Below are positions 30,021 to 33,104 of a DNA stretch of 64,000 nt, in pieces. Each line of letters begins with the position of its first letter. The first letter of the stretch is position 1. The DNA comes from Guillardia theta CCMP2712. Taxonomy: Eukaryota > Protista > Cryptophyta. The stretch covers positions 628,369 through 692,368 of the forward strand of contig NW_005434650.1 in assembly GCF_000315625.1 (NCBI RefSeq), in the 5' to 3' direction. Both the position numbers and the translations under genes were made by a program. A model generated the notes under the pieces. It was not told the DNA's origin. It ran no database searches and saw nothing but the letters and a program-made list of their open reading frames with translations.

Positions 30021-30120
30021 NNNNNNNNNNNNNNNNNNNNNNNNNNNNNNNNNNNNNNNNNNNNNNNNNNNNNNNNNNNNNNNNNNNNNNNNNNNNNNNN
30101 NNNNNNNNNNNNNNNNNNNN
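30021..30120. other. Assembly gap (100 N) flanked by G/A-rich low-complexity sequence
   Basis: Run of n. Confidence 1.
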
Positions 30121-30738
30121 GCACGGGGGCGACAATGTATTCATGGCAGGGGTGGTAAAACAAGGAATAATTGGGGTGGGGTTACGTACCGAGTTGAGTA
30201 AAAGAATCGCGGCGGATCGCACTATGCGGAAGAAGAGGGGGAGGGAGGGGTGAGGGAGGAGGGAGGAGGGAGGAGGGAGTAGGGGGCGATCATGTTGGGG
30301 AAGACGGTAAAGGAGGTGGAGGAGTTGAGTTGAGTGTTGGAGCATCTCATGCAGTGGGAGATACCTTGAGATCCGTTTCAAGGCAGGAGCAGGATTCTGT
30401 GTGTGGGAAGCATGGCCCTGCTTGTAAGTTTGAAGCGACAATGAAGGGGAACGATAGCAAAATGATGAGAATCGAAGATCAACTATGAGCAGAGATGAGA
30501 TGTAGTATTTTCCGGGCTGTTTGGGGGAGCAGGGAGTGAGAGGAAGGTGTTTACATGTATGGTCGTATCTTGCGCATCGGGAGAATCTTTCTTCATCTTT
30601 CCAGTCCCCGTTAGATTTCCTCTTCCAGCCCTTCTGATTCGCTTCCTGCTCTTTCCCTGCAGGTCGAGACTTGTTCCGGAGGAGATGCAGAGCTAGAGAC
30701 CATCCTGGATCGATACCATGATAGTCTCCTCGAGCCGC

Positions 30739-33104
30739 ATGCGCGGCCTCTGTGTTTGTCTGGTTCTTTGCTCCGTCACCAGCCATGTCTTTCCTTCCAC
30801 TAGCACGAATTTCTTCTACTCAGACGGGTATTGCTTGCCTTCAAGTTCCAAGGGTCTCAGAAAGGCTGCCGTTCCCGGCAGCAGGGAGAAACTGGGCGTC
30901 TTGGGCTCCTTTGGAACCGCGCTGCACTCGACAGAGTTGCTGGATAGGATGCTCTCTACTGTGAGGTTAAGAGGAGGATCAAACGCTGAGGGAGGCGAGA
31001 ATGAAGATGAACCTCCTCGTCCTCCTATCGATGACTATCCTCCTCCTAGCGAAGAAGGCGACTTCCGTCCCAACACGGGCCGAGGAGGCTACAGGGACGA
31101 CCGCGACATAGAGGACGCGCGGCATCCAGATCATGCAGACTCATGGCGAAATGTGGATGAGTATCCTCCCGAAGGAGACTGGGCCGATCGCCGGAGGGGC
31201 AGCCGATCCGGAGGCTACAGGTGTCACTCGACGATCCCTTCCTATCCTGACGCGATGAGCAGAAGGAGAGCTGGCGGGCGTGACAGAGGCTACGGGGGAG
31301 GCTTTCAAGTGAGCAACGGAGCTTATGTAGTAGCGTGAATGACGCTCGTGTGAGCAGGACGATGATAGAAACGATGATGGAGGCATCCCTCCTCCTCCAC
31401 AGGAGGACAGGTATCATGAAGGTCGACCAGCCGATCACCGCGATCCTCGGGATCGAAGTTTTCGAGAAGGCATTCTTCACAGGGAGTACGAGAGGGCACA
31501 GGATCCTGAGTTCGATCGGAGAGCCCCGACGAGGTGAGAGGGTCAGGAGCGACTTCTCAGCTCGAAACTCACATCCTGCCTCAGACCACCGTTCGATGAC
31601 TACGAAGATTCGAGAAGGCCAGAGAAGGAAAACGAACCTCCTGGGGGCCGGCAGGAGGCTCGAGATCTGGACAGGGCGGCTAGGCCTGTTCCTTACCTTC
31701 CACGAGGATATGACTATGAGGAGAGGTGAGGCTCGAAGTAGTCTCATGACAAACGAACCCCCTGACCTAGTCAAAGGAGGCGGTCAGGACGGTTTGACGC
31801 ACGAGGGCCTCCTTCCCCGTATGACCAGCGATCCCGGTAGATCCCTTGGGGCACATGGTGGCCACGAGTGTCCTGATAGCCTTCAGGTACGATCGACCCT
31901 TGTCTCCGCCCAGGTTCAGCCGAGGTAGAGAGCGCGATCCCCGCGACCGAGACCCAGCCGATCGAGATCGCTATCGAAGCTATGGGCGAGGCAGAGCCGT
32001 CGACCAGCCACCGTATGAGAGGGATGCCTACTGGTGGAAGCGATATTTGCTTGATCGCAGGGTTGACGAGCTCGAGCAGGTCAAGAGATCGCACTCCCAG
32101 CATCCCCAAGGATCGTCGCTACCCTGATCCCAGGTGGGGGTCGAGAGGAATTTTCAGCTGCACTATGTGATGTTGGTGAAGGGCCGGCGAACCCGTCAGT
32201 CTGCTGATTCGCAATCTCTCTCGCTCAACTACAGCGGAAACGCTTAGACAGGCAGACTAGTTTGCAGAAAGACGTGAGAACACAGCTGACTCTCCCATCA
32301 GGTCTTCAACAGGTTTGGGAGGATTCTAGACGTTTACATCCCTCGTTCCTATTACAAAGGCATCCCAAGGGGTTTTGCCTTCGTGGAGTTTGAGAATTAT
32401 CTGGACTGCAAGGTCACTGGTGATGCCTGTCAGCCTGTTGAGCTCACGGAGGCTGTGCAGGCGGCTCTGAGGAGCTACGACGGAACGAGACTCGACGGGC
32501 GAGTCCTCAGCATCTGCTACGCACAGTGAGCTGCCCGTTGATGTGCTGCCGTGGTACTGACGAGTCGCTGGCAAGAATGAATAGGAAGAGCTCGGGGGAA
32601 ATGAGGAGGAGGAATCGCCAACCTCGCCATCCTGAGAGCTACAAGCGCCCGAGGCTTGATTCTGTTGACGAAGGCGGGCCAAGAGACAATCGGGACGAGT
32701 TTCCTCCTCCTCCTCGACCCGGCAGCACAGAACCTTTCTCCCGCTCCGTAGATCGGAGAGCTCGTGAGGACGAAGATGCTTATCGTGGACCCGATGGGCC
32801 GGATCGAGATGACAGCCCAGGCAGAGGGGAAAGATGGAGGACGCACGAAGAGGCTGAGGCGAGAGCTTGGCGAGATGTGGAAGGGCCCGGTGGAGAGGGG
32901 AGATGGAGAGAGGACGACCGAGATGGAGAAGATAGGAGAGAGGAAGAGGAGACTAGAGACAGAGAGCATGGAGAGGAGCAGGAGTCCCATGACAGGGACC
33001 CTCCTGCTCCTGAAAATGGAGGATACAGTGAAGGCCAGCGCGAGCAAGGGGCATCAGAGCATCACGATGACAACTACAAGCCCGACGAGCACCACGAGGG
33101 ATGA
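30739..33104 (+). CDS. SR-like RRM protein (SC35/SCL-type RRM) with R/D-rich repeats and signal peptide + LRGG leader; multi-exon
   Basis: SLLIRNL (RNP2), DVYIPRSYYKGIPRGFAFVEF (RNP1), MNRKSSGEMR; RD/RS-rich flanks; N-terminal MRGLCVCLVLCSVTS...VRLRGGS. Confidence 0.8.

Follow-up and report, generated by a model that had tools for sequence, protein, structure and literature searches.

Gene structure and transcript support

The 64,000-nt stretch of Guillardia theta CCMP2712 analyzed here (the window; contig NW_005434650.1, positions 628,369 to 692,368, assembly GCF_000315625.1) carries a forward-strand gene for a protein with an RNA recognition motif (RRM) and an N-terminal leader that ends in VRLRGG. 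The database model at this locus is GUITHDRAFT_106442 (P0001). The gene and its features are listed in Table 1. A 633-aa protein from the MMETSP transcriptome of G. theta (P0004, UniProt A0A7S4KUW8) was mapped locally and matches the 11 window exons exactly. Signal peptide, LRGG, low-complexity region and RRM are therefore all encoded in a single mRNA. This bears out the suggestion of an earlier note, made from the sequence alone, that the leader and an SC35-like RRM belong to one gene. The ten introns defined by this mapping are 42-51 nt long; nine are of the GT-AG type and one is GC-AG.

The NCBI model (563 aa) is mis-spliced at four places. The exon encoding RNP2 is omitted, two more exon parts are skipped, and intron 32034-32079 is read through. 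The RNP2 exon is missing from this model because of the GC-AG intron. In a 94%-identical metagenomic relative (L002, see below), a stop codon lies within a stretch taken as coding by the NCBI model. The correct product is the transcript-derived 633-aa protein and not the 563-aa NCBI model. The gene is single copy in the 87.1-Mb assembly (669 contigs), where the next-best RRM is 29% identical.

Both the NCBI and the transcript model use the start codon at 30718 (MIVSSSR...), and an in-frame TAG is located 7 codons upstream of it. The orthologous start in Hanusia phi (P0002) retains M-x-V-S-S-x-R and has no Met at the position matching 30739, where the earlier note had placed the beginning of the protein. 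Judged from both gene models and H. phi, translation most likely starts at 30718, seven codons upstream of 30739.

Table 1 Features of the RRM gene and of a second LRGG leader, in window coordinates
Feature	Position	Strand	Basis or remark
Complete coding sequence	30718..33104	+	GUITHDRAFT_106442; product 633 aa, A0A7S4KUW8; transcript-derived protein P0004 maps exactly
Exons, 11	30718-31220, 31263-31308, 31358-31533, 31585-31725, 31777-31836, 31887-32033, 32080-32133, 32182-32251, 32302-32412, 32461-32525, 32576-33104	+	
Signal peptide, residues 1-22 (MIVSSSRMRGLCVCLVLCSVTS)	30718..30783	+	Heuristics: charged n-region, hydrophobic core, -3/-1 rule; predicted cut VTS|H
Transit-peptide-like variable spacer, residues 23-81	30784..30960	+	Composition; fast divergence
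VRLRGG, ubiquitin-tail-like leader end (LRGG, 30967-30978)	30961..30978	+	Kept in relatives; proposed processing site after Gly87
N-terminal low-complexity region of the putative mature protein, residues 88-381	30979..32197	+	Exons 1-8; acidic first, then Arg/Asp/Pro-rich
RRM, residues 382-458	32198..32576	+	Exons 8 (32198-32251), 9 (32302-32412), 10 (32461-32525) and first base of exon 11
GC-AG intron inside the RRM, between RNP2 and the remaining domain	32252..32301	+	P0004 reads ...AETLRQ|VFNRFG... across it; 1-nt indel in relative L002
KRPR, residues 481-484 (context SYKRPRLDS)	32643..32654	+	No second K[KR]x[KR] match occurs in P0004; candidate classical nuclear localization signal, putatively for nucleomorph entry
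Leader of a second, unrelated gene, MKAAKMPGEWRRRLVLICVIIACSS...CLVLQLRGG|SSGETTG	2624-2439	-	Six-frame LRGG scan, open reading frame list, unbiased scan

Architecture of the leader

Translation of window positions 30718-31309 (+) gives MIVSSSRMRGLCVCLVLCSVTSHVF...LSTVRLRGG|SNAEGGENEDEPPRPP... and contains all elements that had been described before, namely a signal-like start, a transit-like stretch, VRLRGG and an abrupt acidic switch. The signal-like stretch, MRGLCVCLVLCSVTS, is present in the translated leader. According to heuristics, the protein begins with an N-terminal endoplasmic reticulum (ER) signal peptide: the n-region is positively charged (2 Arg), the hydrophobic core comprises 12 uncharged residues, and small residues occupy positions -3 and -1. 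The best cut site predicted in this way leaves His at +1, and alternative cuts leave Ser or Val. The residue at +1 is the published discriminator between the periplastid compartment (PPC) and the stroma and is non-aromatic for the PPC (PMC12136025). Residues 23-87, a stretch of 65 residues ending in VRLRGG, have a net charge of +4, a Ser+Thr content of 23% and 3 Lys. The 30 residues directly after VRLRGG are strongly acidic.

The leader has a ubiquitin-like end, and the distance from MRGL to LRGG is 80 residues versus 76 in ubiquitin. Residues 1 to 80-87 might thus be read as a degenerate ubiquitin-like (UBL) domain that forms a fusion with the RRM protein and is cut off by ordinary deubiquitinases (DUBs), like the ubiquitin-ribosomal-protein fusions, with no targeting leader involved. 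Pfam, however, gave no ubiquitin or UBL match for exon 1, even at E<=1. Likewise, no beta-grasp ubiquitin fold precedes the Gly-Gly tail in the single-sequence AlphaFold2 (AF2) model, which consists of a helix at residues 5-24 followed by disorder (pLDDT 48, low confidence). On these two grounds a UBL domain in the leader was rejected, and such a fusion is extremely improbable.

The putative mature protein and its RRM

The putative mature protein starts with a low-complexity region of 294 residues that contains 62 K+R and 69 D+E, only 2 of the basic residues being Lys, and 26 RD/DR versus 10 RS/SR dipeptides. The RRM is encoded 1.2 kb downstream of the leader. RRM_1 (residues 383-452, E=4e-17) is the only Pfam domain found in the full protein. 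The best single-RRM matches in the PDB are SRp46/SRSF8 (3e-16) and SRSF2 (9e-16), and the domain shares the motifs DVYIPR and RGFAFVEF with SRSF2/SC35 and SRSF8/SRp46, its closest relatives among single-RRM structures (E ~1e-16).

The earlier note had proposed an SR-like protein. This stands for the sequence of the RRM, which is SC35-like, and fails for the remaining architecture. SR proteins carry one or two N-terminal RRMs and a C-terminal RS domain, taken here as 50 or more residues with many consecutive RS/SR dipeptides. In SRSF2 and SRSF8 the RRM is N-terminal, whereas the single RRM of the present protein is central (residues 382-458 of 633) and preceded by about 290 low-complexity residues. 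The C-terminal 175 residues contain 2 RS/SR versus 19 RD/DR/RE/ER dipeptides, and the two flanks of the RRM together contain 39 RD/DR versus 12 RS/SR. Since there is no RS domain, the protein is not a canonical SR protein. Its RD/RE flanks are more alike to the mixed-charge domains of the U1-70K type than to RS domains. With flanks that are RD/RE/Pro-rich, few RS dipeptides and a central RRM, a role in splicing would be a guess.

Lysine is scarce in the putative mature protein (residues 88-633 of P0004, window 30979-33101), with 7 Lys versus about 100 Arg in 546 residues, compared with 3 Lys in the 65 residues of the leader spacer. The low Lys content may be relevant to a ubiquitin-dependent translocon or may merely reflect low complexity of the RD type.

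Conservation of the leader in relatives

Exon 1 was searched against 1.8 billion representatives. Matches were found only in G. theta, one metagenomic relative and Hanusia phi. The metagenomic relative (L002) is a contig of 4271 nt that is 94% identical over 3.7 kb. All exonic indels between the two sequences have lengths divisible by 3 (-9, +6, -6, +3, -3); those in introns are -8 and +1. Substitutions are distributed unevenly. The signal peptide shows 0 non-synonymous and 3 synonymous changes, and the RRM shows 3 and 4, respectively. The spacer (residues 23-81) has accumulated 11 non-synonymous and 2 synonymous changes plus an in-frame deletion of 9 nt. VRLRGG is unchanged at both kinds of sites in this relative (L002/P0003).

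The transcript-derived protein of H. phi (P0002) is 46% identical. It starts at the corresponding Met with a signal peptide (MGVVSSARYERVVCVVLL...), continues with a diverged spacer and then reads ALRLRGG|SNAE. Identity between Guillardia and Hanusia is about 6% at residues 51-82 (alignment A1) and 59% at residues 88-168. RLRGG is invariant in the three taxa (G. theta, L002 and H. phi). The motif is thus conserved while the spacer diverges, both in the alignment and in the substitution pattern. Indels are tolerated in the spacer, and its evolution shows no sign of constraint, which further argues against a UBL domain in this part of the protein.

The leader is a real, translated and selectively maintained part of the mRNA. 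Judging from these comparisons, RLRGG in the leader is above chance: it is invariant beside a freely changing spacer, and the same layout recurs in unrelated genes (see below).

An internal start codon that could give rise to a leaderless RRM protein was sought as well. M71 is replaced by Lys in the relative, the next Met is residue 459, and no conserved downstream Met able to yield such a product was found among the compared relatives. The protein would therefore be an obligatorily ER-entering precursor and not an ordinary host-nuclear splicing factor. Two outcomes that had been named beforehand as fatal to a targeted precursor are accordingly disfavored. The true start most likely does not lie downstream of the leader, as the conserved start at 30718 is upstream and no internal Met is conserved. 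A host-nuclear splicing factor is disfavored, too, as the protein is predicted to enter the ER.

LRGG leaders elsewhere in the window and genome

A second gene of the window, unrelated to the first and located on the minus strand, has a leader of the same type (Table 1). Its exons extend down to about position 533. The leader is followed by an acidic coiled-coil-like region and by ankyrin repeats at 533-976 (Pfam Ank, E=9e-17). By its sequence, this gene encodes a candidate PPC ankyrin protein.

To count such leaders without prior selection, positions 1-200000 of contig C1 and the window were scanned for a signal-peptide-like Met in an open reading frame (ORF) of at least 120 aa with LRGG or one of its 11 permutations. 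This unbiased scan gave 2 LRGG leader cases in the window versus 0 in the 200 kb of C1, counts that are too small for a genome-wide estimate. Six-frame translation gave 7 LRGG matches in the window and 17 in the C1 sample, the majority being out of frame or in non-coding sequence. One of these, ALRLRGG at C1:136947, was rejected as a chance off-frame match within a PHD-finger gene. The number of RLRGG codon strings in the genome at the DNA level (2240 versus 2653 for the control) is uninformative.

Matches of this kind show that LRGG arises by chance, and the motif might be functionless in the RRM gene, too, or the protein might be an ordinary secreted or ER protein. This is very improbable. 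No secretory role would be plausible for an RRM protein rich in RD, and three taxa keep the motif unchanged next to a spacer that changes freely. For the motif class as a whole, chance is ruled out by the starch synthases described in the next section.

Two ORFs of the C1 sample, L020:9525-9914 (+) and L005:4257-4655 (-), have plastid-type A|F leaders without LRGG and without a Pfam domain. They provide an anecdotal contrast of the stromal type.

Starch synthases as a test on a PPC pathway

Cryptophyte starch is made and located in the periplast (PMC6086201, citing Deschamps 2006). Starch synthases were therefore chosen as a blind test, their pathway being known to reside in the PPC. Two G. 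theta loci carry the layout. L024 reads MRILSVLCLLAGAGMILSAS...LNLRGG|TETT, and starch synthases of this type have a linker of 70-150 residues after the motif. L025 has a signal peptide followed by ...MSLRGG|AGSDAIVPDQKLQIVFVSAEIAPWSVTGGLG, with the motif 12 residues before the catalytic core. The flanks of three further starch-synthase loci (L026-L028) were taken without the N-terminal exon.

The L024 ORF was searched against 5.8 billion proteins, and the cryptophyte-type matches (P0008-P0046) were inspected for the motif. All 12 of the cryptophyte-type homologs with a signal-peptide-like start contain x[LMI]RGG at residues ~40-60, in the variants LRLRGG, LHLRGG, MRLRGG, LRMRGG, LRIRGG, LQLRGG, LYLRGG and MNLRGG. 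Among the further cryptophyte-type matches, the motif is present in four that are 5'-truncated, and three have LKGG. In contrast, none of 79 more distant homologs has the motif before the catalytic motif (12/12 versus 0/79, Fisher p = 3e-15). The genera named among the motif bearers are Guillardia, Teleaulax (Teleaulax amphioxeia), Cryptomonas (Cryptomonas paramecium) and Hemiselmis (Hemiselmis rufescens). The cluster of the closest match to the L024 query includes the G. theta entry GUITHDRAFT_159665. The distance from Met to LRGG in the starch synthases is only 40-60 residues and hence too short for a ubiquitin fold, a further point against a UBL domain at the start of the RRM protein.

A leader composed of a signal peptide, a variable spacer and [LMI]-[RK]-G-G directly before the conserved or mature part is thus found in the RRM gene, in the second gene of the window, at L024 and L025, and in 12 of 12 cryptophyte-type starch synthase homologs with a signal-peptide-like start. 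From these sequences, LRGG appears to be a conserved hallmark of cryptophyte PPC leaders. The starch-synthase-related locus L030 (G000:C37:427491-430784, minus strand near 2516) reads ...KKITLRLRGG|STQTN in an ORF of 69 codons that does not itself encode a signal peptide; an intron may divide a leader here, or the sequence may be of another nature.

Probable destination of the RRM protein

The RRM precursor is best read as a protein whose bipartite leader takes it to the PPC, where the leader is removed at LRGG and the mature protein enters the nucleomorph and binds RNA. A probability of roughly 60% is assigned to this reading. The PPC or the nucleomorph is the best reading of the destination because starch synthases, which work in the PPC of cryptophytes (PMC6086201), share the layout of signal peptide, spacer and [LMI]RGG. 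Targeting to the PPC or nucleomorph, the central proposal of the earlier note, thereby gains indirect support, and a destination of this kind appears well supported by the leader layout.

We infer the destination, the cleavage, the protease class, the nucleomorph entry and the function on RNA in the following order. The signal peptide would first take the precursor into the ER lumen, which surrounds the cryptophyte complex plastid. The basic, hydroxyl-rich spacer would then mediate passage through the SELMA translocon of the second membrane, which is derived from ER-associated degradation (ERAD), into the PPC, the relict red-algal cytoplasm. There, VRLRGG most likely marks the removal of the leader by a ubiquitin/UBL-tail protease that recognizes L/M/I at P4, R/K at P3 and Gly-Gly at P2-P1. 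The mature protein, beginning at Ser88, Lys-poor, RD/RE-rich and equipped with KRPR, would probably enter the nucleomorph and bind RNA, be it in splicing or in other mRNA metabolism.

Several observations weigh against this reading. A Phe is located at +3 of the predicted signal-peptide cut, which was called by heuristics. The unbiased scan of C1:1-200000 gave no LRGG leader. RLRGG adjoins the conserved mature N-terminus, and conservation alone cannot tell a processing site from a part of the mature protein. A ubiquitin fold is required by most DUBs, and none precedes LRGG here. Moreover, Cryptophyta reportedly have no member of the clade of ptDUP, the PPC deubiquitinase of diatoms (PMC12412216).

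The Phe three residues after the cut, subject to the heuristic placement of that cut, would also suit an RNA-binding protein of the plastid stroma, similar to the chloroplast ribonucleoproteins (RNPs), with LRGG as a feature that cryptophyte transit peptides share in general. RRMs and acidic N-termini are also known from chloroplast RNPs, and a weak match to a green-algal chloroplast RNP was obtained in the RRM search. Yet a single SRSF2-like RRM, long RD/RE flanks and KRPR are typical of nuclear proteins, and the two plastid-type (A|F) leaders of the C1 sample lack LRGG. The stromal cleavage motif of diatoms is different, with Ala/Ser at -3 and Leu at -2 (PMC3774753), and the LRGG motif is carried by starch synthases, which are non-stromal in cryptophytes (PMC6086201). 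A stromal location is therefore improbable.

Possible removal of the leader at LRGG

Judging from the form of the motif, a ubiquitin-tail protease could plausibly cut at LRGG. The substitutions tolerated in it are L/M/I at P4 and R/K at P3, and GG is invariant. Cysteine proteases acting on ubiquitin or UBL tails include adenain, which cuts (M/L/I)XGG|X, and the coronavirus PLpro, which cuts LXGG|. The match between the motif substitutions and this specificity is a lead only and not a test.

The protein may also be targeted to the PPC with LRGG serving another purpose than DUB cleavage. It could act in sorting, retention or recognition, for instance as a signal that is read by the Cdc48-Ufd1-Npl4 complex of SELMA or by a PPC receptor so as to keep residents from the stroma, or it could be cut by a peptidase that is not of the ubiquitin type. 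The conservation and recurrence of the motif indicate function and not cleavage; the ubiquitin fold is absent before it, and the reported absence of ptDUP from cryptophytes would fit. The linker of the L024-type starch synthases shows, in addition, that the motif is not always flush with a folded domain. Against this, the motif is always positioned at the end of the variable spacer, at the switch in composition. Its L/M/I, its R/K and its invariant GG fit the specificity of ubiquitin-tail cysteine proteases, and at L025 it is located 12 residues before the catalytic core. On balance, a role of LRGG other than DUB cleavage is unlikely.

If the leader is indeed cut at LRGG, a candidate protease, and no more than a candidate, is the UfSP-like (C78) nucleomorph peptidase, a putative DUB with no assigned role that all four sequenced cryptophyte nucleomorphs encode (PMC6559170). 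The nucleomorph UfSP-like gene in question is Gt2_270. As a tentative and rather speculative extension, PPC presequences in general could be removed by a ubiquitin-tail-specific cysteine protease, perhaps UfSP-like, that reads a linear (L)xLRGG without a ubiquitin fold. Leader processing would then be part of the ubiquitin cycle of SELMA, and LRGG would be a positive mark that sets PPC and nucleomorph residents apart from stromal cargo.

Relation to known targeting and processing systems

Bipartite targeting signals of PPC proteins were reportedly described by Gould et al. 2006 and Moog et al. 2011. The leader of the RRM protein shares with the PPC signals of cryptophytes and diatoms a signal peptide, a transit-like region and presumed entry via the ER and SELMA; an aromatic residue at +1 would be missing, as in those signals, if the predicted cut holds, with Phe at +3. 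It differs in where its mark is located: the published accounts and prediction tools consider a stretch of only about 25 residues that surrounds the signal-peptide cut (PMC12136025), whereas LRGG is at the far end of the leader. ASAFind 2.0 (2025) describes PPC leaders only by a missing Phe and the charge distribution near the signal-peptide cut, and current predictors, which rely on the absent Phe, recover only about one quarter of the known PPC proteins (PMC12136025).

With the precursors of ubiquitin and UBL proteins and with the substrates of LXGG cysteine proteases, the leader has in common that it ends in (L)RLRGG and that the variants fit the specificity class. The difference is that no ubiquitin fold precedes the motif here. 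The ubiquitin machinery of SELMA and the deubiquitinase ptDUP, said to have been described by Hempel et al. 2010, mean that ubiquitin is handled in the PPC, where a ubiquitin-tail protease would be expected; the clade of ptDUP itself is the one reported to be missing in Cryptophyta (PMC12412216).

In the searched literature, no paper was found that links LRGG with the terms periplastid, Guillardia, cryptophyte or nucleomorph. The only paper there that combines di-glycine and periplastid concerns an apicoplast ubiquitin-like protein. How PPC residents are told from plastid cargo and how their leaders are removed are unsettled matters in the field. A conserved and easily scored LRGG end-mark would provide a positive predictor of the PPC and nucleomorph proteome. 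It would also suggest that a ubiquitin-type protease acts in a compartment that has a ubiquitin-driven import machine and whose cryptophyte deubiquitinase is unknown. Only some components of the nucleomorph spliceosome are encoded by the nucleomorph genome itself (PMC6559170), and the gene described here nominates a host-encoded, Lys-poor and RD-rich RRM protein as a putative nucleomorph RNA-processing factor.

Upstream region of the RRM gene

An upstream ORF of three codons (ATG CAG AGC TAG, 30685-30696) is located 22 nt before the start codon of the RRM gene. It is retained as ATG CAG ACC TAG in the 94%-identical relative, and its membership in the 5' untranslated region is putative. Farther upstream, about 450-700 nt from the gene, an N run marking an assembly gap (30022-30120) and a simple repeat of the GGGAGG type (30230-30290; 30243-30286) are found.

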